DNA from: Macrostomum lignano
Taxonomy: Eukaryota
Length of the DNA stretch: 64,000 nt
Direction of reading: 5' to 3'
NCBI GenBank assembly: GCA_002269645.1
Contig: NIVC01001196.1
Span: 62,001 to 126,000, forward strand
Part shown: one piece after another, positions 590 through 60,644 of the stretch
Layout of the letters: every line of letters begins with the position of its first letter
How positions within the stretch are numbered: position 1 is the stretch's first letter
The notes under the pieces: generated by a model
The model's input: the letters and a program-made list of their open reading frames with translations, nothing else
What the model was told of the DNA's origin: nothing
The model's database searches: none
Translations under genes and position numbers: made by a program

Positions 590-2110
590 TGCAGGTGGAT
601 GTTCACCTGCCTCTGCTCAAGGGGGGATTGGCTTCCTGCTCTTCCCAGAAGATTCGTGATCGCTCCTCTCGATCAAAGTTTTCTCTGAGCGCATCGGTCA
701 TGCGACTCTTTAGCTCTGGAGGACATGCGCATCAATTTCATCTGTGTGTATGCGCTAAACGCACCACACATTTCCTCTGACCCATCTGAAACTGAGTGCT
801 TCTACAACCAACTAGATGCTCTGATTGACCAGCTGGCCTCCCTGGAGCTCATCATTGTCACCGGCGACTAAATGTCAACACAGTTTTTCTTTGTGAATTC
901 ATTCACTCTCTCGCGACCTGATGACGGCAAGTGGCTGCCTTCGCCAACGTCTCAGTGTTCTGATTTTTCATGGCCAATTAGTCGCAACACCCGACTCAAC
1001 TGGATTCTCTGCCCAATGTCGCAGAGAGCTCGTCTCCGGGCCATTCGTATCATCACCCTGAAATGCACCCCACCCAACCACACTTTCCTGTGCTGCAGAA
1101 TGTGCGTACGCTGGCATCTCTTCGGAAAGCCGGTGCGCCAGTCCCCTGTCCCACTAGGGTGCACTTTACAACCCTGAAATAAAATCATTTTCCTGCAGCA
1201 ACTCAAGGACTCGAAGCTCCAACTACGAAAGCTTCTCTGTAGCAGTCGCTTCCTCGGCAGCAGCCCTACCCAGGAGGCAACCGTAGCAATTTGGTGCACT
1301 TTAGAAGCCCGGCAAGGAATGCAAGCCGCAGTTACCCGGCATGGCACTACCAGCAGTGCTTCCTTCCACTGCGGCTGAAGCGCTGCAAACTGCCCACATC
1401 CAAGCTGCTGAGCGCCTACGCCGACAGCCTGGCGCTGACCTATTGCACCCCAAAGCTGCACAGAGGGCGGTGAGTCGGCTGGCTGGCGAGGGGAAGCGCG
1501 TGGGACTCCACATCAACTACGTTGAGACAGAGGTGCTGCATATTGGCATTTTCAACCCTTTTTCACTGTTTAGACAGTCGACGTAACGCCGAGTTCGCGC
1601 TTGACCTCGCCGGTAGGGTGCCTGCAGCGTGAGCAGCAGCACCTCCTCCACCGGCTGTGGGCAGTACGACTCGGCGCGGATGAGATGGCCTGCGACTGTC
1701 TGCTGGCTGACGCCGGCGCCCCGGACACTGTCGGTGGCGCGGCCTTTGTTCGCGTCCAAGCCATGAAGCGCGCCCTGTGACGCTGACTTTTGCCATCCTG
1801 AGAGCGTATTTTGTTGTTTGTTGTTGTTCACTGCTTATTCTACCGGACGGCAACACTAACGCCCCGAGAAACCAATTCAAGTATCTGGGCGTGCTGATCC
1901 CTGACCCGGATGCCATTGTCAACAACCGCAAGCAGCTGGGGTGGTGGGCCTCCTACCTTTTCGCTCCATCTTCAGCTGTCGGCTCGACAACCTGAAGCTA
2001 GGTTACCATATTCCTCTCATGCTGACCTACGGGCTGGAATTAAGCTGTTCCAATGACTGCCACTGGTGAGGCGAGCTTGAAGGCCTGCCATCGCAACATC
2101 GCTACCATCA
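590..2110 (+). mobile_element. Decayed RTE-like non-LTR retrotransposon, copy 1
   Basis: Fragmented APE/RT motifs across frames: TRLNWILCP, AVSRLAGEGKRVGLHINYVET (RT domain 6-like), FKYLGVLIPD (RT domain 7-like). Many stops and frameshifts. Collinear with the copy at 17570-20930. Confidence 0.75.
1572..1826 (-). mobile_element. Inverted RTE C-terminal fragment inserted in RTE copy 1
   Basis: Minus strand reads YALRMAKVS...AGHLIRAESYCPQPVEEVLLLTLQAPYRRGQARTRRYVDCL, typical of an RTE ORF C-terminus. Flanked by TTCACTGTTT (1562-1571) and TTCACTGCTT (1827-1836). Confidence 0.6.
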
Positions 2111-2113
2111 TAC

Positions 2114-2245
2114 TTCACATGACCTAAATTTTGTATCGCCTAAATTTCATATCACCTGAATTTCATAACGTGTAAATTTTACAACACCGAAAAATCTCTA
2201 CACGCTCCTTCACATACACTTTCAAGCGTTGTGAAATTTATAGGC
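2114..2245. mobile_element. Truncated MITE with subterminal repeats (same type as 21206-21394 and 63618-63774)
   Basis: Repeated TTTCAYA..ACCTAAA-type units with a partial inverted copy (GTTGTGAAATTT). Confidence 0.5.
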
Positions 2246-3561
2246 AAATGGAAAATTGTGGGTAATATGAAGGAGCTAGTGTGCAGATTTTTTATACGTT
2301 GTGAAGTTTAGGTCATATGAAAGCGTCTCTTTTAAATAAGCAAAAAATACAGAAGACGACAGGCATTGTTTACTGTTTCCAAAAAGACACTTCTCTTTGT
2401 CATTCTTTCTTGATTTGTTATGTTGAACAGGAAATTTCTGTATCTTTCGAGTAAACATTAAAATGTTCTTGAAGCTATTTCCACTTTAATTTTTGGAACA
2501 CTCAAACAAATAACGGAGTAAATAGGACGCAATAATAAATAAAAAGCACGGCAAACAAGAATAAAATTTGCAACAAACAATTTCTTTCTCTATAGCTGCA
2601 TGTACTTAATAAATACTATTAGTTGTTTTTAGTGAAATTTCACGTAAGTTAATAAAGAAAACACCAAAACCTCAAAACATTTAAAGCAACTTCAAATTAA
2701 ATAAAAAGTCCAGAAACCTGTGACAAAGATAAAATTCTAAATGTCTAAAAAATAATAAAATATTTCACGCAGGAATTTACACAGAATTGATTATATAGAG
2801 AATACAAAAATACAGTTTGAAAACTGACAATATATATAATACCGGGCGATGACCTTAAAATTAAGGATAATAATATTGTTACGAATTGCTATGAAAGAGT
2901 GGGAGAAGGATTTAAGGGCAAAAAAACTGGTTAAAACTATATTTTCTACTGAAGTACAAAATTCTGGATAAGTATCAAAATTTGATGTGAATTTTAAGCA
3001 GGAGTTTTCACACAGAATCGATACTATAGCTAGTGAATACAAAACGTAAACCTGACGACTTATAACTGGAGGATGACCTTATAATTTTTATAAACTTGTT
3101 ACGAATTGTTATAAAAGGGTGGGAGGTCTGGAGGATGTAAGAACACACTAAAATGATTAAAACAATTTTTTACTCTAGAGTATTAGTGACGCGGACGCCT
3201 CAGACCAAATCATCTGTTGAAGCTAGTCTTTTCAAGTTTCCAAGAGGATGAGTGAGATTCAAATGTTTCAATATTACGAGTAGCTATAGGCGCTATAGAA
3301 TCCTACTGAAAACTAGCTAATTCTCGTAACTCTTCCCTAAACTTGGTCGAAAACTTTAAGCTGTAGCACCAATAGCAGAATATTCATTTCTGTCGAACAA
3401 ACGGATAAAATAAAATTCGGTTTTGAAGCACCATTATTCTTGCAAACCTCTAATAGATCGTAGAGACTAAAAGATGAAAACGTGCCCAGTGTTTTAGTCC
3501 AAGCAACCCCGAGTCCGTCATTTGCATCTCATATTACTCAAGACGCAGCAAATGTGCTGCG

Positions 3562-4157
3562 CTATGCTCTTTGCGGCTTCATGCCAATATAGTCGTAGTC
3601 GTCCTCGTCGGGATTATTCTGGGCAGCTTTGTCGGCTTCTAGATAGTTATAGTCATCTTCGTTCTGAGGGAATGATAATTACGATTTTTTGAGAGCGCCG
3701 TTGTCAACTAAATTTAAATCGAGATAAAAAGGTTTGGTGTAGGAAATATATTTTTGATAGTTACATCTCCCGCAGACGTTGTAGGTCCATATGGACCGGT
3801 GATGCCCTTCAATGTTTAAAAAAACAATAGAAATAATTGACTTCAAGTAATTTTATTGACATATTGTAAGTGAAAAAGTGCATAATTTCCTAATCATTGT
3901 AATTGTTTTACCTCATTATAATAGTTTGTTTGAGTTTTGGGTTGCTTCAGATTCTGACGATACTGAAATGAATAATACAATTTCAAATGCAAAAAATGAG
4001 TATACGCTCGTACTAACAAAATCGAAACACCAATTTAAAATACGCAAATAAACCTTGTAGATGACAGTTCCAACTATTGCAACAGAAACTGCAATTACAG
4101 CCGAGGGAACAGCGATTGCTAAGGCGAGAATATAAGTCGGAAGAGTTTCTTTCGGAT
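3562..4157 (-). CDS. Gene A TM exon and three cytoplasmic-tail exons
   Basis: TM: TYILALAIAVPSAVIAVSVAIVGTVIYK. Tail: YRQNLKQPKTQTNYYNE / GITGPYGPTTSAGD / NEDDYNYLEADKAAQNNPDEDDYDYIGMKPQRA*. Same exon structure in gene B. Confidence 0.8.
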
Positions 4158-7100
4158 CTGAAAAATTATAAATGAAGATATTTGTGCGATTTTGAAAAGA
4201 AATTTTCTTACTGCCCTCTTAGCAAATACATGTAGCACCTATCAAATAAAAACCCTAGCTACAAGTATGTATATACGCAAACGTTTAAATCTTTTCATTT
4301 TTATTGTTTGTTTGAAATGATCGCCTACCATTTTGTGACAGTTTGCCAGTTGTTGTCGACTCCGGAGCAGAGCTGGTATCTGACACAATTTTTGAAGTTG
4401 CTGGCAGACTTGGGCTGCTGATAGCAACCCGTGCTGTGGTTGATGACGCCTGCTTTGAACTGGTTGTTGCTGGTTCTGCGTAAATTTCAAGAGCATTAGT
4501 CACGAGTAATACATCGTAGCACACACCCATATTTCAGAGAACATATGCAAAACATTTTAACGTACCAAAACTATCACCAATGCTGTACTGCAATCGAAAA
4601 CCAAGTCCGTTTGTAGTATTTCTAGCAGCATTTCCAGTTTTAAAAACTACTGTCAAGATGTTCGACAAAGTAAAAAACTTTGTAGGCCATGTGGAGGCGC
4701 CACCTTGAATTGTAACTACGGTGTCGTTTGACCCTTCGTACAAAGCAATAGAGTCAGAGTTGGACGTCAAGTTTAAGTAGATCAAGTTCGCGGAGATTTG
4801 ATTTCCAGGTTTACCGACAAACTGCCATTTGCATGACACTCCGCTTATGTAAGGCAATGTACCTACGCCTTGGTGACTGCTGACCTCACCCCTTACACCA
4901 GTTATCAGCTTGTAGCTTTCGCAAACTGAAGTAAATTTACAAAGCATATCATCTTTGAACTGAATCAGTAAAATTTACGAGTATATAGTACATGCATTGT
5001 ATTTTCCCGCTTCCGTTTGGGTTTGGGTACTGGACTGCCCAGAGCTTGCCGAGTGGGATAGGTGTGAGAGCCATGACCCTTTAGCCGTACATACATTCCG
5101 GGGCGGAAATGGGTGGGCTGGCATCCTACTGACACTCCAGCCCTACGACAAGACGGTGCAGCACTCTGCAAAAGTGCACGGTGTTTCTTGTAAATTATTT
5201 GTATAATTCAGCACTATCACACGTTCGTCCGAACTCATGAACGACACTGTACATTTTTATTTCTCAAAGAGCAAATAACCTTTTTGCAAAGGACAGATAA
5301 GTGTTTACGTTCTGCAGAATATCTCAAATACACTTGTAGTGCCTTGGTTGATCGAGGGAGTTGCAAGGGAGGGAGGGAGGTCGAGGGAGGTTAACACAAG
5401 GGAGGTGCGGATGATGACAGTGCGAGCAGGTAGCCACTCAGCAGCACCAGAGAGGTGGACACGAGTGTGAAGGCGTACAGACACTTTGCAGGCCTGAGTG
5501 AAGACTGCGACGGGGGAAAAGGATTTTGGAGATTGAAAAAATAAATGTAGAGTATACCGCTTTGTCGTACCGGGGGGGGGGTTGCTTCGCTCAGGAGTGG
5601 CTGAATTCGCTTCGCTTCTATATTTCTGTCGAATAGTAATAGTTCACTTTTATTTCACCAAATTAAGCACGCAAAAGGGTTCGAGTGCTAGAGAGGGAGA
5701 GCAGGTAGGGCGGGAGCCCGGCTAGAGCCGGACGTGCACATGATAGGGGATAGTATGGGGCTGGGTAGGGCTAAGCAACGCAGAAAAAGGAGAATCAGGT
5801 GCCTCCGCGGCTAGTAACGTGATTGGACGAGCCCAAACGAGAGAGAAACAGAAAGGGAACAGCCAAAATACAACGAGAGAACTAAAATAAAAACAAGAAT
5901 TGCAGCTGGACAGATGATGGACAGACAAGAATAAACAAGCGGCAGTGAGAGGAATGCAGGCACAGCTCACAACTTAAGTACGTTTAACTACTCTCGTAGA
6001 CACATTTTAGCAGATCCCAATGTACACAATACTCACAGGTATCTGAAGCTTCGTATTTCATCTTGATTCCGAGTGATCGTCGACTACTACTTTTCGGAAT
6101 GTATAAACGCACAGTTAGGACGTTTTCAGTTGTTATAAAATCCCGCATTGTGTCTGAGAAGCTGCTCTCAAGGGTAGCAACTTCAGAACCAAGGACTCCG
6201 TCATACAGAGTGACGCTTTCATAACGAGAAGTAAGGTTAAAAAAGGTAAAACGAGCCACCACTCGCTTTGACGGAGAGACCCTGATCACCCAGTAGCAGT
6301 CCGAGCTGATCAAGAAGCCCATAATGCCTGCAGACGAGTGGCTGGCCAGCTCTCCAGTGTCGTTGGTCAGGAGCTCCGTGCCTTGGCAGACTGGTGGTAA
6401 GTATAGGTCAATAAAAAGTGCTGCTTCAATTGGTGAAAAGGAATTCTTTTCAAGACTGTTACGAGTCTGCATCAATAGTGTCAGTGGTAAAAGCGTTCAT
6501 GAATCTATTATTTGGGCATTGCAACACATTTTACAATTTTAACAAATCAAAACTTAGTTTTATGAGCCAAAACTTAAGTCGCATTAGTTTTATGGAATTA
6601 CGAGGGGTGTTGCAAAAGTTCCGGACTACGCTCGTAGTGTTCGCTAAAGCACAATTCTTATCAGATTTGGATGAGCTTTCACCCATAAACTATTTGGTTA
6701 TTAATAAGTGCCAGGCTAAAATTTTGCATGACTAGGACAAACACAGCCTACATTAGAGCCAAGTTAAGCCTCAGGGTCTATGTTATTTCACACGATTTCA
6801 CTCGGAGAATGAGCCAACCAAAAAACCACTCAGATTTTGGTTCGAAAGAGAGTCAACGTCACTTCATAATGGCATGTCAGCACATGGGTAAGACACCAAC
6901 GCAGACTTTTAACAAAGTTTGCACTGCTTTCGGTGATCATGTGTTGGGTCGTACACAAGTGTTTGCCCATCACCGACTTGCTGCTGATGGTCAAACAAGT
7001 GTCGCTGATACTGCTTGCTCTGGCCGTCCGCGTTCCAGCACAGATGACAACAATGCGGCTGCCGTGCTCCAATATTTGGAGGCAAACCCATCTGCATGTG

Positions 7101-10100
7101 CGCGTGAAGTGGAGAGTGTGTGCGGCATTCACTACTCGTCTATGAGTTGCATTCTCCAACGCCACGGCTGGTCGAAGATTTGTGCTAAGTGGGTGCCACG
7201 AGAGCTGACAGAAGAACACAAAAAAGCACGGGTGCGATGTTCGGCAGACAACTGGGATGTATGGAACTATCTTGGTGTTGAGAACTTCAAGGAGCTTGTA
7301 ATCACAATGGACGAGACATCGCTCCTAATTTTTAATCCACTGACAAAGCAGCAGTCGATGCAGTGGGGGCCAAAGGGACGGCACCCACACAAAGGCCCTG
7401 AAGTCAGCCTGGACCCAGAACATCATGTGCACAGTGTGGTTCGATGCGTGAGGCGTGCTACTCGTTGACTACCTGCCGCAGGGCCAGACAATCAATGCCG
7501 ACTATGTGATTAACCAGCTCGAGCTACTGCGCGCTGCTGTTCTATCCAAGCGCCGAATCATGCGTCAGAAGCCGTTCATCCTTTGGGACAACGCGCGTCC
7601 GCATGCCGCTGCTCGCACTCGCGCCAAGGTGGAAAAGCTGGGCTTTCATCAGCTAAGTCACCCAGCCTACAGCCCCGACCTCGCGATTGCCGACTTCCAT
7701 CTCTTTGGTCCAATGAAGTTGCCAATGCGTGGGCAAGTTTTCACGACACGTCAGGAGGTCATTGACGCCGCTAACGCATCGCTGCACCAGCTGGACTCCA
7801 GCTTCTGGAAGGCTGGGTTTGACAATCTGATCGAACGCTATCAGAAGTGTATAGCATTGAACGGTGAATATGTGGATCGCAACAGTGCAGGGCCAGACAG
7901 AAAGAACGACATCAGTAACAGTGATAGTGATTGTTAGGGATCGATGGCATCTAGAACTTTGATACAGTGATTTATGGTGAAGGGACATTGATTAATTGCA
8001 ACGTGTTTTAAATTGTTGCTTTTTGTTCCACTTGACACTAATAAAACATATTAATGTGTTCCCTAACTGTTTTTGACCAATTGTTTTAGAATATTATCCA
8101 GAAATTTCCTTTGTTATCATTGCATTGAGAAATTTGCCTACAGGAAATCCGGAAACTTTTGCAACACCCCTCGTAGAATGCGCTTGCTTAGTGAAATTAA
8201 ATCAACAACTGAAAGCTTTGCTCACATTTTTCGGTTGTGTAGTACTGTATCTCGAATCCAGAGCCTGTTCCACCCGACATGAAATATACAAGCATCACAT
8301 TTGACTTTGAAACGATAATTCTTGAACTGACAGACTGGAAGTTACTGTGTCCGTAGTATCTTGCGATTAATGGTGAGCCTCGAATTCCTTCAGATATGCT
8401 GATATAATCACTGGAGTAGAGGCTGAATGATGTAATGTGAGCCACTACCCTGTATCCCAATGGCGCGGTAATGGTCCAGTTGCATCTCATATGTCTCAGA
8501 TAGCTAGGGGATGCAGATTTCACCTGGGAGAACAACTTTCCTTGGCTGGCTTGAAGAATTTTCTGACCATCACAGACTGGAAACCGAAGCAACGATTGTA
8601 TTTTTATATACTCTACCCTGGACATCCGCTAATTCTCTGAATAAACTCTCACTTACAGTTCTCCGCAATGCTGTACCGCATTCGTAAGCCGAAGTAATGC
8701 ACACTGTGATCTGTTGTGAACCTGACCCTCATGCTGTTTGTGGTGGATCGGTATCCGATCTCTGTCGGAATAGAAGTGCTGCTGACCAATGTTTCTGAAC
8801 CATCGTATAATGTCACTCTGTCGTAATTATTCTCTATGCTGCTACTAGTAAACCAGGCAACTACTTTTTTGCCTGGTGACACAGAAATTAACCAATTGCA
8901 TCTCATAGAGTTCAAGTAGTGCGTTGTTCCAGCGTTGGTGTGAGTAACCACTTCACCGTTGTCGGAGTCCCATTTCTGAACGCTTGGGCAAGCTAAAATG
9001 AAATGTATGATTTAAAAAACAAATAAAAGTTTCATAATGGGTTTTAATCGTAGTGAATTAGAGAAAGTCACCGAACCTTGCTCGTAATAAAATTGAATAG
9101 AAAATCCGATTGATTCATGAAGATTGTCAGTTGTAAACGAAATATGCGCGTCTCCCGAAGTCACCCAGTGTATGTTTTGGCCGAAATAGGTATTGCAATA
9201 CTGCAAATCTCTATCACTGCCAGGCTCACTGGCAGTTGAGGAAAGATTCGTTACAATTTTTAGACAGTCCCCTTTGCTAAGATAGTAGGTTTCGATAAAG
9301 AGATAGATGTAGAATCCAGGGCGTTTGGGCAGTGTCCACAGGCAGGTTAAATTGGGCGCGTATGGGGACATGCTGGTGGCATTGTAGCCCCTGTGGCTCT
9401 CGATGACTCCAGACTGGTTCGACGAATTTGCATAACTGATCGTGCCGCACGTGTTATTAACGGCTGAAAGCAGGCAGTAGTATTTGTTTTTTACGATATT
9501 TTTATTTTTAGTATAGGACATAGGTGGATTATAGTACGCATATGTATTAGAAAAGTGGTAGTGCAAATGACTTATTTTGTATGGTGCTGTTGCTATGCCT
9601 ATTTTATCGTTAATAACTGTTAATATACCTTTTTGCAATCAATTTCGTCGTTTTTGCGTTCAATTTCGGCGCGAGCGCTAGTGTGCAGTCCAAACAACTG
9701 AGCCATAGACACTGGGCAACTTTTGCGTTCAAATTCGGCCTTTTTGCGTCCTATTTCGGCAGCTTACGGCATCAAGCATACTTGCGGAGACGACTATAGG
9801 CCTGCTTTAGGAGACAAATTTTTCGTCCCACCCTCACTGAATGCGATCGAGTGAGAGTGTCTATGGCAAAAACATTCGAACTGTGCCCACAGTGCGGCCC
9901 ATGTGATTGCGCTGCCGAAATAGGACGCAAAAAGGCCGAATTTGAACGCAAATGTTGCCCAGTGTCTATGGCTCAGTTGTTTGGACTGCACACTAGCGCT
10001 CGCGCCGAAATTGAACGCAAAAACGACGAAATTGATTGCAAAAAGGTATATTTTAAGCATTTGCTATTAAAGTTAATAGACTGCCTCAATGGGCTGTTGA

Positions 10101-13047
10101 ATTTGCGTTAAAGCTTTTATTTTTGACGTCATGCATGTATTCAGCATTAAGTCTTGTCTAGAGATTTTTAAAATAGCTAATCCTTATTTTCTTACAACAA
10201 ATATTAAAAGTAGGAAGTACCATAAATACCTGTGACTAAAATACTTATTATAATTGGGGCCTCCACTTACGATATATCTGACATATCTGAAGATATATAT
10301 ATCTATCTGACGGATATCTGAGTATGAATACATTTTTCTTGTTTCTTAGTTGCTTTGCTTACCGTCATCAGTGCTTAAGGCTCTGCTTACCATTGTCAAT
10401 TTCTTGAAACCACACTGCAAAGCCTACGTAATACGGCAATACGTATTTTTAACACATATCTCCAATCACAAAGCCACTTAAGTTGGCTAAGCCTGATACA
10501 AAACGATCCAGCAAAAATTTTGTAACCAAGTAATCGACATAGTTAACATGACTTGAGTCTCAAAAAATAAAACTCACAGCTTTCTATTTCGAACTTGATT
10601 TGAAAACCCGTGGACTCATAAGCTCCATTGGAACTAAACCTGATGATGAAGTTGCCATCCACTTGATGCGCCATGTCAGTAACAGCTCTCCAGCCGCACA
10701 AATTCACATTCGAACTGCCACCATTCGTGCCTCGAGCTATCGACACGCAATCTCCATTTCCGAGAGACACGTTGCCAACGTAGAGCTGGTAAAACTTTCC
10801 GGACACCGATGGCAAGGTCCAGCTGCAGGACATGCTTGCGGCGTATAAGCTATGTTGATCGTAGCCGGGGTGGCTGACAATCATTCCGGAAGAGTTGGAA
10901 GCGTCATCAAATGAGACTGGTCCGCACGCGCTGCTGTTAGCTGGTGAAATTTTGATTAAGCAAGCAGATGACTGTCAGTTATTTCAATTTAGCTAAATAC
11001 GAGCGTAAAACCGATATAATCATTGATACACCCTAGAAATCGCACCTGCATGATAATATGATCCAATGATTCACAACAATTTATTATAGAGGTCTGCGAT
11101 CAAGTGGGGCGTGAGGGACAAAGCGCTGTCATCCCCACACCTAGATTTTACTATGGAAGGGGGCATGTACCCCTGTACGCCCTGTGGCGACGCTCCTGTC
11201 TGCGAGAATTATTCAATTGTATCAGAATAAAGCCGAGATCATGACTTCAAATCGCATCTATATGCTAATACGGTATGATCCAATGACTCACAACCGGATA
11301 ACACAGGCAAACTTACCTGATACGGTGGCATTGTACTCTAAACGAAATCCTTTTCTGGCGAATTGGCTGTTTGAATAAAAATTCACTGTCAGAATATTTG
11401 CAGACGAAACGAACTTCGGCGACTCGTAGCCAGCTGAGTCATTCGCGCTAACGACTGCAATTTCGGCTGACGTTGTCAGGCCGTCGTACAGAGTCACTCT
11501 GTCGTTTGGCGACTCGAGATCCATGTAGGTGAACCAGACTATGACTCTTTTGCCAGGTGGCGCATCGAGCTGCCAGTAGCACTGCGAGTTGCTGCTGTAG
11601 TTTGTTGTGCCGACTCCGCTGTGGCTGGCGATTTCGCCACCGGCCTCGGCTGACAGCCGCTGGAGCCCGCCGCTGCAGTCTGCGCAATGGTTGGTCCGGT
11701 TAGTGAAGGACTAATGGCTTATTGATGCTACTAGATTGAGACTACTAGAAGTAGTAAGATAAAAATATGTAAAATACAAAATTTAAATTCATACCTCAGT
11801 TTTTTTAATATCACAAAAACAATCAGTGACCATCCCATTGTGCGAAAGACCGGTTCTCAACATCTAATTTTAGAACTTCCAAATATGGCAAATGTTAACC
11901 TCAGAATTACCTTCGTCTCACCCTTTCTATTCAAAAAACTCCATCTGTCGAATGATAAAATTCCTTTCGTAACCTCATAAAAAACTTAGTTTAGGCCAAA
12001 ACCGGCTTAAATTTGTGTAGAAATGCAAGCCCAAAATCCGAGCTGGTTCGGAGCAGCCTTAAGAGAACATAAGACTTATCAAGAACTACAAGGCTACATC
12101 TCTGAGAGAAGTGCATACAGATTGATAAGAGTTTGTAAAGTCTTTGTTATTTGATTAATGAGAGCTAAGACATTACCGGTCGTGATTGATCAGTTGATTT
12201 CTGTTGATTTATTGAATTAAAGGCCCCCCTATCTAAATCCTAATCCCAATCCTAAGGGATTGGATAGGATCCATTTGGACCGATTCCGATACTCTTAGAC
12301 GATTATTGATTTGATTGACTTTTGGTACCCTCGATTAACCGATAGGGGCACAAGACTCCGACTCTGGTATTTCTTCAAGAAAACGCCCCTCTGGAGGACC
12401 TTGTCACTGTTATTAAATTGATTATAACAATATTGTTTTATAATTAGGGCGCATCTCTGATTCTGATCACTGATCTCGAAAAATACAATGACGTCGACGA
12501 ATTAAGTTGTTACGTTCACTAAAGTATTCTCATACCCGGCCGACTTCAGGATTCAAGAAACTTCGCAGGAAGCGACATCAACAAGACCAGCTCTAAGAAT
12601 CTGCCCTATAAGGATGAGAAAATTCTGTTCCCAAATTCTGTGCTCAGACTTGCGGTCTGGTCTGGAAGTGGGAGTTCGTGCGTTTGACGTTATTCTCTCT
12701 TTCTCTTCCCTTTCTCTCTAGTGTGCTAAAGCTGACTCATAATGATTAACCTCAAGGAAAATTTCAAGAGCTAAAGTAGATTAACCACAGTTATGAAAAT
12801 GCAGAAGTCAAACCGGAAAAAATGTTTGTTATAAAATGCAAGATATTAGCAGAAAACATGAGTAACTTACAGACAGCTTGACTGCTGCACATTGGCAGAA
12901 AAATCAACAAGGCACAAGCAACGAAGCCATGCTGCCAAAGTAATCTTTCTGCGACAGGAAAAATTGAAAGATGAATAATAAGCATGGTAATAACCATTTG
13001 TGTATTTAAAACCAACTATTTAACTTACTGCGTTCCTGGTAGGTCAT
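3562..13047 (-). CDS. Gene A: type I transmembrane protein with signal peptide, 7 CUB domains, Ser/Thr stalk, TM helix and Tyr-motif tail (~1018 aa)
   Basis: Hand-built GT-AG model, all phases compatible. Exons: 13047-13029, 12948-12871 (signal peptide); CUB exons 11679-11317, 10940-10578, 9463-9077, 8992-8657, 8576-8226, 6390-6037, 4925-4566; stalk 4475-4329; TM 4157-4054; tail 3962-3912, 3806-3765, 3663-3562 (TAG). Total 3057 nt. Each CUB exon is phase 1-1, has a length divisible by 3 and shows C..G.i.s...Y...C.W, D.v.lyDG and GF.l.Y motifs. The donor at 9076 (GTTCGG) is weak. Confidence 0.85.
6601..8173 (+). mobile_element. Mariner (D34D) DNA transposon, non-functional, in a gene A intron
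   Basis: TIRs CGAGGGGTGTTGCAAAAGTT(T)CCGGA at both ends; TA target duplication (6599-6600, 8174-8175). The equivalent gene B intron is short and lacks it. Confidence 0.95.
6809..7937 (+). pseudogene. Mariner transposase pseudogene
   Basis: WVPREL, ITMDET, WDNARPH, YSPDLAIADFHLF; 34 residues between the second and third D. Frameshift near 7385 and an in-frame TGA near 7450. Confidence 0.9.
9626..10048. mobile_element. MITE with ~140-bp TIRs and probable TA TSD
   Basis: 9624-9763 is the reverse complement of 9911-10050 with one mismatch seen; no coding capacity. Confidence 0.85.
10391..10423 (-). pseudogene. 33-nt remnant of a deleted CUB exon in gene A (possible in-frame micro-exon)
   Basis: Reads (C/G)FAVWFQEIDNG|GTAAGC, matching the end of the gene B exon at 60285 (GFILWFREIDSG|GTAAGC). 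Preceded by an AG; phase 1-1. Confidence 0.6.
11090..11200. repeat. Short interspersed repeat ending GGCGACGC.CCTG, related to 61130-61237
   Basis: Shared GAGGGACAAAGC...GCATGT.CCC...GGCGACGCWCCTG blocks at both sites. Confidence 0.45.
12871..13047 (-). CDS. Gene A exons 1-2: start codon and signal peptide MTYQERKRLLWQHGFVACALLIFLPMCSSQAV
   Basis: ATG at 13047, two GTAAGT donors, 80-nt intron ending TTTTCCTGTCGCAG, basic n-region, hydrophobic h-region, SSQA cleavage-like site. The phase-1 end fits the first CUB exon. Confidence 0.75.
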
Positions 13048-14468: not shown

Positions 14469-17037
14469 CGCTTCCGGACATTTGCCCTCCGGCACTTCCC
14501 CTCCGGCACTTGCCCTCCGGCACTTCCCCTCGGCGGTGTTTGCCCTCCGGACATTTGCCCTCCGGGACATTTCCCCTCCGGACATTTGCCCTCCGGACAT
14601 TTCCCCTCGGGGACATTTGCCCTCGGGGACATTTGCCCTCCGGACATTTTCCCTCCGGACATTTCCCCTCCGCACATTTCCCCTCCGCACATTTGCCCTC
14701 TGCAAATTTACCCCCTCGCACATTACTCACCTCACCTCCTCCTGTACCCACCCGTCGTTCCTCCAGCACCAACCTAATCCTCCCGCCTCTTGCATCCATC
14801 AGGTTCTTCTCCAGCCAACAACTCATCCTTTTCTAGTAAGCAATATATACCCGCGCCCTACCCTATCCCCAGCCTTACCTGTACTGTCAACAGTCTATGG
14901 CCGAAAGTCTGACCATTTTACTATATAAGTGATTGATCTTGGCTCTTAAAGAATACAAGATTCCTCCGAAAGAAATCATGGCTTTTTACATTAAGAGCTC
15001 TAAAGGCAAAGATGTTTTGGTTGAAAATGGCCGCAGGTTTTACACCGACAAGCGAGTTACAGGCGAAGGCGAGTGGCGCTGGGTCTGCGAGTTGTACAGA
15101 GGCGGCCGCTGCCGGGCCGCTGTGTATACGCTCTCTTTCCCGGACACGACGCAGCCAGCTGTCATTCGCCGGCGCCTAGGTGAACACACGCATGAAGGCG
15201 ACGATGGTAAGATCGAGCGCCTGCAAGTTTACGACCGAATTAGGACACGTGCCGGTGAGACAGTGGAGACGACTGTGCAAGTGCTGCAGGAGGCAGCGGG
15301 TGGCATGTCCGAAGCTGCAGAGGCACTTTTCTCTGTTGAAAATGCCAAGCGGACTATCCGTCGCCAGCGCGAAGGCGAGCATCTGGTACAGCCAGCCAGC
15401 CGAGGCGAGATCGTCTTCCCAGAGCGCTTCACGGTGATGGAGCTGAATGGCCGGGCAGAAGATGTGCTCAAGTGGGACAGCATTCTAGAAGAGCCAGGCA
15501 ATGAGCGCATCTTGATTTTTGCGACTGATCGCTCCATCCGTCTGCTGGGCCGAAGTGAGGAGTGGCAGGGTGATGGAACCTTTGACGCGGCGCCGGCGCT
15601 CTTCGCCCAGCTTTACAGCCTGCACGGCGACGTAAACGGGTCGCTTGAGCCGCTGGTGCTGGCGCTGCTGCCCGACAAGACGCAAGTCACGATGGAGCGG
15701 TTGTACCGCAAGGTGGGCCAGCTGGCGCAGTCAGAGTGTCCACAAAGGCTACTCACAGACTTTGAAATGGCAGCGATGAATGCAGCTCATGAGGTGTACC
15801 CCAATGTAGAGACTAGTGGGTGCTATTTTCACTTCAGCCAGGCCGTTTTCCGGCACATTCAGCAAGACCAGCGGACGCTACAGCAGTACCAGGCCAGCCA
15901 AGACAACAGGGTGCTGGCTAAGATGCTCACAGCACTGGCTTATGTGCCCCTGCCCGACATCATTGCTGCATTTGAGCTGCTGGCACAATGGCTAGCCGAC
16001 AATCACGACTGGCTTAGCGATTTAATTGATACCTACTTCGAGTCGACTTACATCGGAGCCCGGCCTCGCCGTCGTAATCAGCAGCGTCGCCCGCCACGCT
16101 TTGGCCACGAGAAGTGGAATATGTATGAGCGCGTTATGGCCGTTCGTCCCCGCACCAATAACAAGGTCGAAGGCTTCCACCAGGGCATGTCGTCCTCGCT
16201 AGCCGCATCCAATCCAACCATCTGGCGCCACACCGATTGGATAAAAAAGCAGCTGGGCCTGACCAACACCTCAATTAATGGCCTGCTAGCCGGTGCTGCA
16301 CCGACGCCCCAGCGCCAGGTATGGAAGGCGCGCGACCAGCGGCTGCAGCGATTGGCGGCGACGTACCAGCACGCCTGGCTGGAGGTGCCTGTCGAGCATG
16401 CGGACCATCCACTGCTGTGCTACCTAAGAGGCTTCGCTCACGCATATTGCACATAACTTGCATTTTTTTTCAATCGTGATTTACTTTTATTTTTGCTGAC
16501 CCGCTGACCTGTTATCACTTTCTCCCACCTCACTCACTCGCTGAACCTGCGCAATAATTATCAAGATAATACTTACTAGACGCGCTTGATAACAAAAACA
16601 ATAATACTGTTCAAAAAAACTTAACCGTTTCCTAAAAACTCAAAACTTTGTTTTAAAACTTTGCTGTTAAAAAGTTGATGAAAACCGTTATATTAATAAA
16701 TAAAACAATAATACCGTTAAGAAAAACTTCAAAGTGTCTCAAAAGCTTAAGACTTTAGACTTTTCTCTCGTAATTCTTGTACATTTGTGTACATGTACTT
16801 ACTTGTTTGGACACACACTGAAGGGAAATTTTTTTGTTTCATGATTGTGGAGAAATTTCATTTCCAGAGGGGAAATGTCTTGAGGGCAAACGTCCGGAGG
16901 GCAAATGTCCGGAGGGCAAATGTCCGGAGGGCAAATGTCCCCGAGGGCAAATGTCCTCGAGGGCAAATGTCCGGAGGGGAAATGCCGGAGGGCAAATGTC
17001 CGGAGGGCAAATGCCGGAGGGCAAATGTCCGGTAGCC
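14469..17037 (+). mobile_element. MULE (Mutator-like) DNA transposon with repeat-rich TIRs
   Basis: 9-bp TSD GTCGTCTCC (14460-14468, 17038-17046). Long TIRs built from ~15-bp units (CCGGAGGGCAAATGT and its reverse complement). One central ORF. Confidence 0.95.
14978..16456 (+). CDS. FLYWCH-MULE transposase, uninterrupted ORF
   Basis: N-terminal WRWVCELYRGGRCRA...HTHE zinc-finger-like motif. MULE core: GDGTFDAAPALFAQLYSLH, LLTDFEMAAMNA, GCYFHFSQA, RTNNKVEGFH. Confidence 0.9.
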   Translation: MAFYIKSSKGKDVLVENGRRFYTDKRVTGEGEWRWVCELYRGGRCRAAVYTLSFPDTTQPAVIRRRLGEHTHEGDDGKIERLQVYDRIRTRAGETVETTVQVLQEAAGGMSEAAEALFSVENAKRTIRRQREGEHLVQPASRGEIVFPERFTVMELNGRAEDVLKWDSILEEPGNERILIFATDRSIRLLGRSEEWQGDGTFDAAPALFAQLYSLHGDVNGSLEPLVLALLPDKTQVTMERLYRKVGQLAQSECPQRLLTDFEMAAMNAAHEVYPNVETSGCYFHFSQAVFRHIQQDQRTLQQYQASQDNRVLAKMLTALAYVPLPDIIAAFELLAQWLADNHDWLSDLIDTYFESTYIGARPRRRNQQRRPPRFGHEKWNMYERVMAVRPRTNNKVEGFHQGMSSSLAASNPTIWRHTDWIKKQLGLTNTSINGLLAGAAPTPQRQVWKARDQRLQRLAATYQHAWLEVPVEHADHPLLCYLRGFAHAYCT

Positions 17038-20500: not shown

Positions 20501-20930
20501 CGTGGGGCTCCACATCAACTACGGCAAGACAGGAGTGCTGCATTTTAGCATTTTCCAACCCTTTTTTCACTGCTTTTCTAGCGGACGGCCACACCGGTGC
20601 TGACACACGGGTTGGAGGCTGTTCCTATAACTGCCACTCGCGATGCGAGCTTGAAGGCCTGTCATCACCACCTCCTGCGCAATGCCCATTGCATAGCTGG
20701 TTTCCTAAACGCCTGAGCAACGCACAGCTGGTGACCTGGACCCGCAAGCCGCCTTTGGGTCGCACCCTGCAGAGTCGACACCAGATGTTTATCGGCCACA
20801 GCGCCTGCGCTCACGCACGGGACACCAGGCCCCCGCTCGCCGACCTGCTGCTCAGCCCGGCCTGTGGAAGGCTCCGCCGGGGCCAAGCTCGCTGCAAAAC
20901 TTTGCAGCACTGACTGACACTTTCTCTCAG
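17570..20930 (+). mobile_element. Decayed RTE-like non-LTR retrotransposon, copy 2
   Basis: RT motifs WRTSKIVAIPKK...LRGIAL, SGFRPGRST, FVDLCKKFDSV, GVLQDDVL, LAYADNVAL, GLHINYGKT; C-terminal GRLRRGQAR. Multiple stops and frameshifts. Confidence 0.85.
17902..18188. mobile_element. hAT-type MITE inside RTE copy 2
   Basis: Ends TAGGGGTCGGCCAACT / AGTTTCCGACCCCTG and a subterminal GGCCCGCGGGCCGCATGTGGCCC palindrome typical of hAT MITEs. No clean 8-bp TSD found. Confidence 0.6.
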
Positions 20931-21205
20931 ATGTACAACCGGGCTCGTACAGGCTCAGTATCTTACCCCTAAATCTGCAGCTAGGCTGGACTCAGCTGTT
21001 TAATAGTAATAATAATAACAATATTAATAGTAAAAGTACTATTTTATTGACTAATTTTCTAAACTTCTAAAAGTCTATTACAACCTTCGATACCGTATGG
21101 GGTGTTGGACCGCGCAAACAAGATGAACTTGGTCCCTCACAATTACTCTCCAATCCTCCGATATATCCAGTCTCCTTTCTATGGCTTGTTATTTTAAATA
21201 TAGGT

Positions 21206-21394
21206 TTTCACAAGACCTATATTTCACAACGCCAAAGCACATGATTTCACATCGCCTAAATTTCATGTCACCTAAATTCAGATCACCTAAATTTTACAAC
21301 ATCTAAAATCTCAGAAAGCTCCTTCACATTTTGGCTGAAATTTAGACGTGAAGTATGTTGATTTTAGGTGTCATGAAATTTAGGTCGTGTGAAA
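21206..21394. mobile_element. MITE with subterminal tandem repeats
   Basis: TTTCACAAGACCTATATTTC ... GAAATTTAGGTCGTGTGAAA inverted ends with internal repeated units. Confidence 0.6.
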
Positions 21395-22538: not shown

Positions 22539-25500
22539 TTATTTAAATGTGCTGAGCTGTGGGTCTCCTTGCGAAAACGTGCCAATAGAGTCGTAGTAGT
22601 CGTCCTCGCCGAGATTCCTCTGTGTAGTGTTGTATAATTTGTCGGCTACTGAATAGTCGTTTTCATTCTGAAAGAATAATAATTTCAGTTTTTAGGGAGC
22701 TGTTGTCGACTTAGTCAAAACTACTTATAGGTAAAATATTGCGGGAAATATGATAGTTACATCTCCAGCTGACGTTGTCTCAGGTGCATATGAACCGTCT
22801 CTAACCTGAAATATTTGTTAGAAACGTAATTGAAATTTAAATACTCGTAGCATCATTTGCAAGTGTGAGAGTGCATGACAGCAAAATCGTGAATTTCAGA
22901 CCTCGGTATTAGAATAAGTTGGAGTTTTGAGTCGCTTCAGATTCTGAAGATACTAAAATGATTGAAATATTTTCAAATGGTGTAAATATTAAATTAATTA
23001 AATGAAATTAAAGAACATTACTTCAAAATTCGCAAATAAAACCTTGTGGATGACAATTCCAACAATTGCAGCATTAATTGCAACTGCAGCCGAGGGAACA
23101 GCGATTGCTAAGACGAGAACATAAGTCGGAAAAGATTCTTTGGCTTCTGAAAAACCATGGATGAGTCGATTTGTGTCATTTTGTAAAGAAATTTACTAGC
23201 TGCGCTATTAGCAAATAGCACTCATCCAATATATTTCAGTGTTTTATTGTTTCAATAATTTAATGTTTACTACACTATGCACGCAAACGTTTAAATCTTT
23301 TTATATTGGTAAAGTTGCTCGCTTGGCAAGTACGATAAATAGGAAAGCGAAAATCAACATTTGTAGCGATGCGTTTCGCACGAAACTGTGCATCTTCAGG
23401 CTAGGTATATTTTGAGCAAAAAACGAGTGAGAACGGCAATAAATACAGAATTTTGGGGTTATAAATTCAATCAATATTTCTGAAAATGAGGGAAGGGGGC
23501 ACTGGCTGTACATTAGGCCTATTATTCTTCTAACTATTTCGACTACCATTACGTCCCTGGACTTCGCCTCTCGACTTTTGGACAAACATGTACTTTAAAT
23601 AATAAATATTAAATATTGATTGAATTTATAACCCCAAAATTCTGTATTTATTGCCGTTCTCACTCGTTTTTTGCTCAAAATATACCTAGCCTGAAGATGC
23701 ACAGTTACGTGCGAAACGCGTCGCTATAAATGTTGATTTTCGCCTTCCTCTTTTGATATAATTAGCTAAGTTTGCTTGAAATGAATCTCCTACCCGTTTG
23801 TGACAGTTTTTTAGTTGTTGCCGACTCCGGAGCAGAACTTGTTTCTGGTATCATTTTTGAAGTTGTTTGCAAACTTGGGCTGCTGACAACAGCCCGTGTT
23901 GTAGTTGGCGTCGTCTGCTTTGAACTAGTTGTTGCCGGTTCTGCGAAATTTTAAGAACATTAGTTTTAAGTAAGTTATATTTAACACGAGCATATGTAAC
24001 GTCGTAACACTTACAATATTACAGAGAACATCAACAAAACATTGTTTGAAATGAATTGCCTACCTGTTTGGGATAGTTTTCCACCAGTTGTAGCCAACTC
24101 AGGAGCAGAGCTTGTTTCTGGTATAACTTTTGCAGTTGATGGCAAATTTGGACTGCTGAAAACAGCGCGTGCTGTGGTAGGTCGAGACGGCTGCTCTGAA
24201 CTGGTTGTTGCTGGCACTGCGGATTTTTTAGAACGTTGTTTAGGAATAATGCGTCGTAGCACTTCCTTACTATTACAGAGAAAATAAACATGAAGAAATT
24301 AGTAAAACTTAATCAGCATGTAGCAAAGCATTAATGTAAGTTTAAATAGACATATTTTAGCAGACCCAATATAGTAAAACAAATACTCACAGTTATCGGC
24401 AGCTTCGTATTTCATTTTGATTCCGAGTGATCGATAGCTACTCTCTGGAATGTGTAGATGCACGGTCAAGACGTTTTCTGTCGTTATGAAATCCCGCGTT
24501 GTGTCCGAGAAGTTGCTCGATAGGGTGGCCAGAACTGTTGACCCATTGGCTCCATCAAACAGAGTGACGCTTTCATAGCGGGAAGTAATGTTAAAAAAGG
24601 TAAAGCGAGCCACCACTCGCTTTGACGGAGAGACCCTGATCACCCAGTAGCAGTCCGAGCTTATCAAGAAGCCCATAATGCCTGCAGACGAATGGCTGGC
24701 CAGCTCTCCAGTGTCGTTGGTCAGGAGCTCCGTGCCTTGACAAACTGTTGTTAAGTATAGGTCAACAACAAATGAAAAAAGTGCAACTGATGAAAATAAG
24801 AATCGAATTTATTTTAGCTTCTAATACTGTAACATGCATTCGTCAATAGTGTAAACTGCATAAGCGTACATATGCATCTATCGTTTGGCAATGCAAATTT
24901 TTTTACGAGCGTATAGTTTTACGGTGAAGTTGTTTAACTAAAAGCTTCAAACGCATTTCCTTACTGGGACTATGCTGCGCTGGATTTTCAAAATAATTAA
25001 GTCGCACATGAAAGCCTTGCTCACATTTTTCCGTTGTGTTGTACTTCATTCCGAAGCCAGAGCCTGTTCGACTATATATATAGGTATCCGTCACAAAATA
25101 TACAAGCATCGCATTTGACTTGGAAACAAAAATTCTTGAACTGACAGACTGAAATTTAAAGCTTCCGTCGTAACTTCCAATTGTCAGTGAGCGATTTGGG
25201 TGAAGTCCATCATATATTGCGACATAGTCCTTGTAGTAGAGACTGAATGATTTAAACTGAGCCACTACGCTGTATCCCAAAGGCGCGATAATACTCCAGT
25301 AGCACATCATACCGTTCAGATAGTTTGGGGATGATGAGTCATTATGGTCGAAAAACTCGCCTTGGCTGGCGTTAAGAATCTTCCAACCGTCGCAGACTGG
25401 AAAAAAATGAAAGTATTAATTTTTTATTCTATATCCTGCTCTCTATGCTCCTTATAGCTCGTAATTTATTGAATAAGTTCTAACTTACAGTTCTCAGCAA

Positions 25501-26353
25501 TGCTGTATCGAATTCGAAACCCGTAGTAATGTCCAGTGGCATCTGTTGTGAACCTGACCCTCATGTTGCTTGTGGTGGACAGGTATCCGACCTCTGTCGT
25601 AATAGAAGTGCTGTTGGCCAAAGTTTTTGAACCGCTGAGACCATCGTACAATGTGACTCTGTCGTACGAATACCGGTAATACTGTCTGCTAATACGAGGA
25701 GTAAACCAGGCGATTACTTTTTTGCCTGGCGACACAGAAATTAACCAATCGCATGTCATATTGTTTAAGTAGTGCGTTTTTTCGGGATTGGTGTGACTAA
25801 CTACTTCACCGTTGTCGGAGTCCCATTTCTGGACGCTTGGACATGCTAAAATGATGTTTATGATTAAAGAAAGAAAAAAATTCTTCTTGGGTTCTTATCG
25901 TTAAACGTGAATTAGAGAAGGTCACCAAACCTTGCTCATAGTAAAACTGAATAGAGAATCCGATCGATTCATGAAGATTGTCCGCTGTGAAAGAAATATG
26001 TGCGTCTCCTGTTGTAATCCAGTGTACTTTTGTACAGTAATAGTAGGTACTGCAAAACTGCAAATCTCTATCACTGCCAGGCTCACTGGAATTTGAGGAG
26101 TGCCTTGTTACAATTTTTAGGCAGTCCCCTATGCCAAGGTCGCAGGTTTTGATAAAGAGATTGATGTAGAATCCAGGGCGTTTGGGAAGTGTCCACAGGC
26201 AGGTTAAATTCGGCGCGTATAAGGACATTATGTAACCCTGATATGGCACGCTGTTGTACAAGTCCTGGCCGTAGCCTTTGTGGCTCTCGATGACTCCAGA
26301 CACTTTCGATGAATTTGCATAAATGATCGTGCCACAGGTATTATTATTTACAT
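22539..26353 (-). CDS. Gene B (paralog of gene A), 3' exon block: 4 CUB exons, 2 Ser/Thr stalk exons, TM helix, tail
   Basis: Exons: CUB 26353-25931, 25845-25489, 25396-25025, 24744-24391; stalk 24216-24064 and 23940-23794; TM 23146-23043 (TYVLVLAIAVPSAAVAINAAIVGIVIHK); tail 22952-22902, 22805-22761, 22667-22539 (TAA). All GT-AG, phase-compatible and collinear with gene A. Confidence 0.85.
23341..23750. mobile_element. MITE with ~140-bp TIRs in the gene B stalk-TM intron
   Basis: 23341-23479 is the reverse complement of ~23612-23750 with few mismatches; absent from the equivalent ~170-bp gene A intron. Confidence 0.8.
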
Positions 26354-34459: not shown

Positions 34460-34850
34460 AAGCAGGAAGGTTTCGTTGTGAACCGGAAGTAACAGGTGAG
34501 GGCCAACCCCGAGGAGGTGAGCCGGAGTCAGCGGTGACGGATCGGCCGGGTCGTTGGAGACGGTGGTCAGCGGCCGGCAGTTAAGAATGGCCTCGATCTT
34601 GACGAGGAGAGTGTGTAGTTCCTTATCGGAGATGCGCTTGCGCCAGAGGGCAGGACGAACACTGGACTTTGTGAGGGCGACGAGGCGCTCGACCGCCCCT
34701 TGGTGCCAGGGGGCTCGGACTGGCGCGAACTTGAACATCAGGGGTCGCGTGGCGGCGAGTGGTCGGAGGTTGTTGTGGAGCTTTTTCTAGAAGTCGATGG
34801 CGATGTGGTTCTCTACGAACTTTCCTGCGGCTTGGAAGGCTGGGCAAGTT
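34460..34850 (-). mobile_element. BEL/Pao retrotransposon fragment, integrase core
   Basis: FKFAPVRAPWHQGAVERLVALTK...EAILNCRPLT...LTPAHLL, characteristic of BEL/Pao integrase. Confidence 0.85.
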
Positions 34851-39858: not shown

Positions 39859-39865
39859 ACTGAGA

Positions 39866-60284: not shown

Positions 60285-60644
60285 CACTGTCAATTTCTCG
60301 AAACCACAATATAAAACCATTCGCATTGGCACTGTCCGTGTTAAGCCGCACTGTGGCCGTGTTTGCAGAGGTTATAATAAGCCCTGAGCTGGGAATAAAC
60401 CATGATCTAGAGCTTCCAGCACTGAACAGAACTACTGAACCGTTTGAGCCATCAAACACTGTCACTGTATCATTTTTACGTACAGAAAGGGACATAAAAC
60501 GAAAGACGATTCTCTGTCCGACAGGAGCGTTTACGTTCCAGTAGCAGTCCATGTTGTTTAAATAAGGACCACTAGTAGCACCGTAGTGACTCTTTATTAG
60601 ACCTCCCCTTTTCGTTGCTGTCACGTTTCCTGTTCCGAGACAAG
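60285..60644 (-). CDS. CUB-domain exon, probably an upstream exon of gene B
   Basis: 360 nt, phase 1-1, TTTTCAG acceptor, GTAAGC donor. Reads CLGTGNVTATKRGGLIKSHYGATSGPYLNNMDCYWNV...GFILWFREIDSG. Its 3' end matches the gene A remnant at 10391-10423. Confidence 0.85.

Follow-up and report, generated by a model that had tools for sequence, protein, structure and literature searches.

We identified a complete gene with seven CUB domains, which we call G1, in a 64,000-nt window of the genome of the flatworm Macrostomum lignano (contig NIVC01001196.1, positions 62,001 to 126,000; coordinates below are those of the window unless another locus is named). G1 is an intact protein-coding gene. Judging from its sequence, its product is a type I membrane glycoprotein, with a signal peptide, seven divergent CUB domains, a stalk that could be O-glycosylated, a transmembrane (TM) helix, and a cytoplasmic tail. 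G1 belongs to a multi-copy, lineage-restricted, and uncharacterized family of putative CUB-only receptors, which is already in the databases in the form of fragmentary automatic predictions. Our analysis establishes the structure and domain content of the gene, the restriction of the family, and its mode of diversification. We lean towards the view that these proteins are ligand-binding surface receptors with a functional tyrosine-rich tail; of these traits, ligand binding, location at the surface, and the part played by the tail are inferred. Nothing yet points to an unusual mechanism, and we see here a receptor family specific to one lineage, not a novel type of system.

M. lignano is a model flatworm that is transgenic and amenable to RNA interference, and to our knowledge, the surface receptors specific to its lineage are almost entirely unexplored. 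The locus provides a complete and testable model of a putative seven-CUB receptor. It also illustrates how the family changes, by tandem segmental duplication and by in-frame loss and gain of CUB exons, with a fossil of one lost exon still in place.

Structure of the gene

We rebuilt the gene model independently. A stop-to-stop scan of the minus strand revealed seven open stretches, each about 120 codons long and with the hallmarks of a CUB domain. Choosing GT-AG splice sites that keep the frame gave 13 exons and 1004 amino acids, and adding a 42-nt exon gave 14 exons. The coding sequence runs from 13047 to 3562 on the minus strand, and its 3057 nt encode 1018 amino acids with one terminal stop. 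All 13 introns are GT-AG. This reproduces exactly the 14-exon, 1018-residue open frame of the original prediction. Each CUB domain is encoded by a single symmetric exon (phase 1-1), and the exons for the stalk and the TM helix are likewise entered in phase 1.

Independent public predictions, either identical to G1 or derived from close paralogs, confirm three of the junctions. The CUB1/CUB2 junction is present in P0062 and the CUB3/CUB4 junction in P0017 (both are 100% identical to G1). The junction between the signal peptide and CUB1, along with the reading frame of the signal-peptide exon, is matched by the paralog fragments P0178 (MCSSQTVY, then CSGG across the junction) and P0181. In the predictions P0002, P0179, and P0180, the signal-peptide exon is translated in the wrong frame. 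A counterpart of the 42-nt exon is annotated in P0003 (positions 27899-27946 of its locus, L001) and in G2/P0004, a paralog in the same window. As for the start of the protein, an in-frame and unspliced ATG at about 12997 is an alternative, and it would also give a hydrophobic N-terminus.

Domain content and tail

The Pfam family CUB (PF00431) matches the G1 protein in seven stretches, with E = 7.3e-62 and 207 bits (the cut-off is 21.4 bits), and CUB_2 matches as well. No further Pfam family was found in the protein at E <= 0.01, and in particular, no EGF and no LDLa, so the expectation that G1 contains CUB domains and no other modules was correct. The N-terminus (MTYQERKRLLWQHGFVACALLIFLPMCSSQAV, followed by Y) has a hydrophobic core, with a Kyte-Doolittle hydropathy of about 1.8 over 19 residues. 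There are two hydrophobic segments in total, and the second one (residues 928-953, with hydropathy of up to 2.6) is the TM helix. The cytoplasmic tail that follows is acidic and rich in tyrosine. In the stalk exon, 22 of the 48 residues are serine or threonine, and the protein contains 18 N-glycosylation sequons. Pfam, hydropathy, and composition thus agree with the signal peptide, seven CUB domains, mucin-like stalk, and single TM helix that had been proposed; the tail comes to 65 residues.

The seven CUB domains are just 12-38% identical to each other, while domains at the same position in different paralogs are 52-96% identical. This pattern implies that the array is old and that each position is individually conserved. 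We considered a recent internal duplication of domains as the origin of the array and rejected it because of the low identity between the seven domains. The first pair of cysteines is conserved in all seven domains, and the second pair (C3-C4) is found only in CUB2 and CUB3. CUB domains with two cysteines are known.

Four tyrosine contexts in the tail are common to three paralogs: KY.QNLK, G.Y.P.T.SA, NE..Y, and an acidic-YD.I motif near the C-terminus. The last of these fits the YxxPhi sorting signal. Its form in G1 (DEDDYDYI) resembles the single-tyrosine version of the immunoreceptor tyrosine-based activation motif (ITAM), or hemITAM, in its isoleucine variant, and the corresponding sequences are EDDYYDSI in G2 and EFEYDYI in P0003. 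When YNYL-x14-YDYI of G1 is compared to the full ITAM, or YxxL/I-x(6-12)-YxxL/I, the spacing is too wide, and such short patterns may match by chance. An AlphaFold2 model of P0003, which was built from a six-sequence alignment and gives an outline only, shows beta structure throughout the domains, disorder in the stalk and tail, and a single helix at the TM segment.

Restriction to M. lignano

To examine the distribution of the family, we ran an exhaustive HMMER search with the full-length paralog P0003 as the query, against 1.84 billion representative sequences and with a threshold of E <= 1e-3. Of the 617 matches, seven were at 57-100% identity, and all of these were from M. lignano; the remainder were at 37% identity or below. 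A word-indexed search gave just six matches, all of them "CUB domain-containing proteins" of M. lignano; the number may be this low because candidates matching the low-complexity stalk crowded out others. The searchable protein sets hold no other Macrostomum species, so restriction to M. lignano means that, within these sets, the family appeared in no other flatworm and no other animal. Sequence searches against PDB gave generic CUB matches only (E of about 6e-8). Neither these nor the exhaustive search identified a characterized one-to-one ortholog, which, along with the gap between 57% and 37% identity, upholds the earlier suggestion of a lineage-specific CUB-only family.

Names were recovered for 30 of the 617 matches. 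The more distant matches among these 30 include cubilin-like proteins from sea urchins, a damselfly, and a tunicate; a choanoflagellate protein of 5156 amino acids; proteins from a mussel, a hemichordate, fish, and metagenomes; and P0018, a distant multi-CUB protein from M. lignano itself (29% identity). The best-scoring of the distant matches are two giant CUB proteins, P0008 and P0010 (WP_196888738.1-like and WP_196888509.1), from the flavobacterium Aureivirga sp. CE67. These proteins from a marine bacterium have 3391 and 2494 amino acids and are 26-27% identical to the query over 7-12 stretches; CUB arrays as large as these are unusual for a bacterium. We rejected horizontal transfer as an explanation for these top matches because the identity is only 26-27% and the high scores arise from the many repeats.

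At least 6-8 different sequences of CUB1-2, and at least six from CUB3 onward, are present in the protein sets. Some of these copies may be homeologs or alleles of the polyploid M. lignano genome.

Gain and loss of CUB exons

Members of the family differ by whole phase-1 CUB exons and have at least 5 to 9 CUB domains. The domain order is 1-2-A-B-3-4-5-6-7 in P0001/P0002 (nine CUB domains), 1-2-3-4-5-6-7 in G1, (...)B-3-4-5-6-7 with two stalk exons in P0003, and 3-4-5-6 with two stalk exons and without CUB7 in G2. G1 has the features that define this family of Macrostomum multi-CUB TM proteins: the order 1-2-(A-B)-3-4-5-6-(7), one or more stalk exons, the TM helix, a tyrosine-containing tail encoded by three exons, and CUB exons in phase 1-1.

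The CUB exons A and B would sit in intron 4 of G1, and this intron contains the 3' end of a deleted CUB-B exon (Table 1). The remnant, of about 37 nt, is 88% identical at the nucleotide level to positions 10322-10372 of L001, and it matches YGFAVWLQEIDN of P0002. The remnant and its donor site imply that G1 descends from a nine-CUB form by deletion of two CUB exons. This loss keeps the reading frame, and the junction of CUB2 to CUB3 (10578|9463) occurs in no form but the seven-CUB one. Given their symmetric phase, skipping of CUB exons could also yield diverse isoforms.

Intron size in the family is driven by insertions. For instance, the intron between CUB5 and CUB6 is 13 kb in the L001 gene (12334-25430 of NIVC01002128.1), 1.8 kb in G1, where it contains a mariner element, and 0.28 kb in G2. 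Intron 8 of G1 (4926-6036) includes a GC-rich stretch of about 0.9 kb (approximately 5000-5950) with a G10 run and purine-rich tracts, unlike the short AT-rich introns. It is probably another repeat insertion; it has no match to Rfam or to tRNAs, and Rfam and tRNA scans of the whole window were empty as well.

A tandem duplicate

The paralog G2 lies 10 kb upstream of G1 in the window. Positions 1045-9476 are collinear with 18976-26366, at 69-86% nucleotide identity, and this unit of about 8.4 kb starts at the 5' edge of CUB3 and takes in the 3' flank. Since the unit begins at the edge of CUB3, G2 is a tandem duplicate that was truncated at its 5' end. No signal peptide, CUB1, or CUB2 was found near G2, and CUB7 is missing from it. 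G2 is intact, with 710 codons and nine introns, and the ratio of its nonsynonymous to synonymous changes relative to G1 (dN/dS) is 0.49. The open frame and this ratio imply that G2 has been kept under constraint. It probably has 5' exons elsewhere.

There is also an orphan CUB exon of type B about 34 kb upstream of G2 (Table 1). The B exon lies 580 nt upstream of CUB3 in L001, the paralogous locus, and the orphan may be an upstream exon of G2, across a 34-kb intron filled with transposons. If the 34-kb stretch between the orphan exon and G2 is an intron enlarged by insertions, its flanks might still align to the 578-nt intron of L001, but a comparison to both flanks gave no alignment.

G1 had been described as part of an expanding tandem family. 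The tandem copying holds, given the collinear G2 and the orphan exon at 60.3 kb. The evidence does not show that the family is expanding: the duplicate is old (dS between G1 and G2 is about 0.33, and the nucleotide identity is 69-86%), truncated at its 5' end, and separated from G1 by transposons. Part of the copy number may reflect the polyploidy of M. lignano. The elements between and around G1 and G2 are a MULE/FLYWCH element, a BEL/Pao fragment, a P-element/THAP9-like element, and a Ty3/gypsy element.

Selection

We computed dN/dS with the Nei-Gojobori method for G1, G2, and the L001 gene. As a whole, the genes are under purifying selection (dN/dS of 0.49-0.62). Among the domains, dN/dS is 0.18-0.40 for CUB6, 0.33-0.48 for CUB3, 0.49-1.15 for CUB4, and 0.51-1.09 for CUB5. 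If CUB4 and CUB5 are pooled and compared to CUB3 and CUB6, they have more nonsynonymous relative to synonymous changes in two of the three pairs of genes (Fisher p = 0.003 and 1.4e-5; p = 0.16 for the third). These results demonstrate domain-specific relaxation or diversification but do not prove positive selection.

The TM exon (4054-4157 compared to 23043-23146 and to 27556-27654 of L001) has a dN/dS of 2.2-5.0, but over just 33 codons and with a dS of 0.04-0.08, versus about 0.3 elsewhere. This could be due to chance, gene conversion, or selection on the nucleotide sequence.

It is very improbable that G1 is decaying or not expressed and that the 1018-residue model is a computational construct: the acceptor of exon 13 is weak, two CUB exons were lost, and transposons have inserted into introns, but the frame is open over 3057 nt, 14 exons, and 13 canonical introns, dN/dS is below 1 relative to paralogs at a dS of about 0.3, the exon loss kept the frame, and the insertions are all intronic.

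A putative surface receptor

CUB domains are protein- and glycan-binding modules, and their binding often depends on calcium via a Glu-Asp-Asp triad. If G1 is a ligand-binding receptor, the stalk would hold the CUB array off the membrane, and the array would bind proteins or glycans outside the cell. CUB3 and CUB6, which are conserved, might be a common scaffold or bind a common partner, and the fast-evolving CUB4 and CUB5 might provide copy-specific binding. Tyrosines in the tail, above all in the C-terminal acidic-Y-D-x-I motif (a YxxPhi signal, and hemITAM-like in G1), would couple binding to endocytosis or to phosphotyrosine signalling. The family itself diversifies by segmental tandem duplication and by gain or loss of whole phase-1 CUB exons. 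This proposal predicts that CUB4-5 carry the specificity, that CUB3 and CUB6 act as scaffold, and that particular tyrosines in the tail matter.

The nearest analogue of this putative signalling mode is CDCP1 (also known as Trask or gp140) from vertebrates, which is a single-pass glycoprotein with only CUB-type domains on the outside and with tyrosines in its short tail that serve as substrates of Src-family kinases. Its three CUB-like domains are divergent, whereas the flatworm domains match the canonical Pfam CUB strongly. CDCP1 was not among the 30 named matches of the 617 or in the PDB searches; no direct comparison to the CDCP1 sequence was made.

Several observations weigh against our proposal. 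The Glu-Asp-Asp triad is complete in just one of the seven CUB domains, CUB4, and the other six are short of one or two residues, so the array as a whole is not of the calcium-binding subtype (the cubilin, C1r/C1s, and MASP type). Also, the glutamate of the CUB4 triad is absent from G2 and P0003. Together, these argue that calcium-mediated binding is not a family-wide property. The two YxxL/I motifs in the tail are 14-17 residues apart, which is longer than in a canonical ITAM, and motifs as short as those of the tail may owe their conservation to something else. In no comparison between G1, G2, and the L001 gene was dN/dS significantly above 1. The AlphaFold2 model of P0003 has low confidence (pLDDT of 49.9). 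The least certain part of the gene model is the 19-nt first exon with its 80-nt intron, and this exon has no support from homologs. Finally, literature searches found no expression, localization, or binding data for the family, and no paper that mentions it.

An endocytic or scavenger receptor of gut or protonephridial cells is possible, but we think it unlikely. G1 would then be a membrane-anchored analogue of cubilin, with CUB domains that capture nutrient or carrier complexes and a YxxPhi signal that drives uptake via AP-2. Cubilin has 27 CUB domains and EGF repeats, lacks a TM helix, and is anchored through amnionless. Like G1, it has a long CUB array, which in cubilin captures ligands, and it is the nearest known system by CUB sequence. 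The best match of CUB4 among solved structures is cubilin CUB5-8, and CUB4 aligns to the ligand-binding CUB5 of cubilin in 3kq4, with matching residues at the acidic triad; this alignment also favors our main proposal. Most prominent among the distant matches that were named are cubilin-like proteins, and the C-terminal acidic-YDxI motif does fit YxxPhi. However, the similarity to cubilin is generic to CUB domains (25-30% identity), and G1 differs from cubilin in having seven CUB domains, no EGF repeats, its own TM helix and tail, and the triad in one domain only. Also, nutrient receptors are usually encoded by conserved single-copy genes.

It is doubtful that the family consists of structural glycoproteins without any receptor function, whether in the surface coat or secreted (as part of the glycocalyx, mucus, or adhesive-associated material, by shedding or from a TM-less isoform). 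The mucin-like stalk and the many N-glycosylation sequons would suit such a role, a prediction from a paralog locus (P0007) skips the TM exon, and publication titles mention CUB proteins in marine adhesive secretomes. On the other hand, the TM helix and the tail motifs are retained across the paralogs, which suggests that the cytoplasmic part is used, and P0007 may be an artefact of gene prediction.

Within the receptor proposal, a more specific version is about as doubtful: a flatworm-specific system for immune recognition, allorecognition, or recognition of mating partners or gametes. Specificity would come from CUB4-CUB5, which evolve fast, and from gains or losses of whole CUB exons, and the hemITAM-like tail (DEDxYxxI) would signal to a Syk/Shark- or Src-type kinase. 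The original prediction had also suggested recognition or immunity as a possible function; CUB4-5 do evolve fast, but with dN/dS not significantly above 1. If the family is such a system, CUB domains would have given rise to it independently; otherwise, the family is one more lineage-specific receptor expansion. Lineage-specific expansions of receptors with extracellular domains are common in invertebrate genomes.

Least likely among the receptor-like roles, and improbable in our view, is a role at ionotropic neurotransmitter receptors, as a subunit for auxiliary functions or clustering whose CUB domains bind the channel's ectodomain, like SOL-1 of C. elegans, dSol-1 of Drosophila, LEV-10, and NETO/SOL-2. 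LEV-10 has five CUB domains and LDLa, and the LDLa module of NETO, SOL-2, and LEV-10 was not found in G1 (Pfam, E <= 0.01). The original prediction set G1 apart from familiar CUB proteins on the premise that those carry other modules. This was incomplete: SOL-1 and dSol-1 are type I proteins with four CUB domains and no other module (PMC9083331). G1 shares with them its overall layout, as a single-pass type I protein with a CUB-only ectodomain (PMC9083331), and this is what favors a role at channels. But SOL-1/dSol-1 has four CUB domains instead of seven to nine, and its gene, which is neuronal, conserved, and low in copy number, acts as a modulator of AMPA-type receptors. Proteins of the SOL-1 and NETO type are conserved and low-copy, while the flatworm family is multi-copy and fast evolving, with a variable number of domains, rapid change in CUB4-5, a mucin-like stalk, and a tyrosine-rich tail, and no PDZ-type C-terminus was seen in the tail. 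No relative above 37% identity was found outside M. lignano, which makes orthology to SOL-1 unlikely; the comparison was by architecture and not to the SOL-1 sequence.

Public annotation of the family

The caveat that G1 might already be annotated was justified, as it is in UniProt as two fragments. P0062 (A0A1I8G727; 241 amino acids) corresponds to residues 34-274, and P0017 (A0A1I8G774; 131 amino acids) covers part of CUB3-CUB4. The translation of G2 is identical to A0A1I8G8E9 (P0004), residue for residue, from an internal methionine of that entry to the stop, and this match by itself places the window in M. lignano. P0003 is NCBI's BOX15_Mlig034294g1, and L001 is scaffold NIVC01002128.1. 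The uncharacterized M. lignano entries A0A1I8G727, A0A1I8G774, A0A1I8G8E9, A0A1I8JHG7, A0A1I8G210, and BOX15_Mlig034294g1 all belong to this family. These entries are automatic and mostly partial or chimeric; none of them is the full 1018 residues, and none has a described function. Because public annotation splits G1 and fuses its relatives to their neighbors, it will affect studies of expression or orthology that use these models.

In P0009/P0156, as compared to P0155, a family member (CUB7 and 3-4 stalk repeats) is fused to an adjoining gene for an EGF-domain TM protein with its own signal peptide; these are probably chimeric gene models. In P0084 and P0160, the stalk exon is read out of frame. 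P0007, which skips the TM exon, is a prediction from the P0003 locus. We searched for the contig that encodes P0017 and found none. A query with CUB2-3 identified more fragments of the family, and no transcript-derived (Logan) proteins were among its matches. Nothing relevant emerged when M. lignano papers and supplements were searched for gene identifiers, UniProt identifiers, and "CUB": the matches to "cub" were DOIs from Current Biology or "Parcubacteria".

Other features of the window

The exons of G1 and the other features of the family's loci are listed in Table 1.

Table 1. Coordinates of G1, its paralog, and associated elements within the window
Feature	Position	Strand	Description
G1 exon 1	13029..13047	-	ATG + 6 codons (MTYQER), 19 nt, donor gtaagt; least certain exon, not covered by any homolog annotation
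G1 exon 2	12871..12948	-	signal-peptide exon KRLLWQHGFVACALLIFLPMCSSQAV, ends in phase 1
G1 exon 3	11317..11679	-	CUB1, aa 34-153, phase 1-1; identical to P0062
G1 exon 4	10578..10940	-	CUB2, aa 155-274, four-Cys subtype; identical to P0062
G1 exon 5	9077..9463	-	CUB3, aa 276-403, four-Cys subtype, slowly evolving; identical to P0017
G1 exon 6	8657..8992	-	CUB4, aa 405-515, sole domain with full E-D-D acidic triad, fast evolving
G1 exon 7	8226..8576	-	CUB5, aa 517-632, fast evolving
G1 exon 8	6037..6390	-	CUB6, aa 634-750, most conserved domain (dN/dS 0.18-0.40)
G1 exon 9	4566..4925	-	CUB7, aa 752-870
G1 exon 10	4329..4475	-	Ser/Thr-rich stalk, 48 aa
G1 exon 11	4054..4157	-	TM helix, aa ~928-953, phase 1 to 0
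G1 exon 12	3912..3962	-	juxtamembrane tail YRQNLKQPKTQTNYYNE
G1 exon 13	3765..3806	-	42-nt tail exon GITGPYGPTTSAGD, weak acceptor
G1 exon 14	3562..3663	-	acidic Tyr-rich C-terminus (NEDDYNYL...DEDDYDYIGMKPQRA) + stop
Remnant of deleted CUB-B exon, 3' end	10391..10427	-	G1 intron 4; VGFAVWFQEIDNG, then donor gtaagc
Foldback/MITE-like insertion	9622..10052		G1 intron 4; two 142-nt arms, 99.3% complementary
Mariner-like DNA transposon	6600..8176	+	G1 intron 7; terminal inverted repeats, broken transposase frame
G2	22539..26353	-	10 exons: CUB3', 4', 5', 6', two stalk, TM, three tail
Orphan CUB exon	60285..60644	-	intact, phase 1-1, CUB-B type, AG/GT splice sites

The region at 14473-17032 contains an open reading frame (ORF) of 507 amino acids (14933-16453, plus strand) with a FLYWCH zinc finger and a Mutator-like (MULE) transposase. 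On either side is an array of a 15-nt tandem repeat, and the two arrays have opposite orientations (TCCGGACATTTGCCC at 14473-14700 and its reverse complement at 16863-17032); they resemble the terminal inverted repeats of a Mutator-like element, here composed of repeats. Two features lie between G2 and the orphan exon: a BEL/Pao-type fragment (DUF5641) at 27055-27753, which adjoins an array of the 12-nt repeat GGCGGGCCGGCA (27164-27400), and a 570-residue ORF at 29804-31513, with a weak TNP/THAP9-like RNase-H match that is just below the Pfam cut-off. A GC-rich (55-63%) Ty3/gypsy-type long terminal repeat retroelement occupies 34400-40000, and its open pol frame of 931 amino acids (reverse transcriptase, RNase H, and integrase) is on the minus strand at 35364-38156. 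Finally, a 30-nt satellite (AGCCTTGACATCTCAGCAATTCCCCCAGTA) forms three arrays of up to 34 copies, at 43586-44615, 50383-50759, and 56158-56685, in a region of strong negative GC skew.

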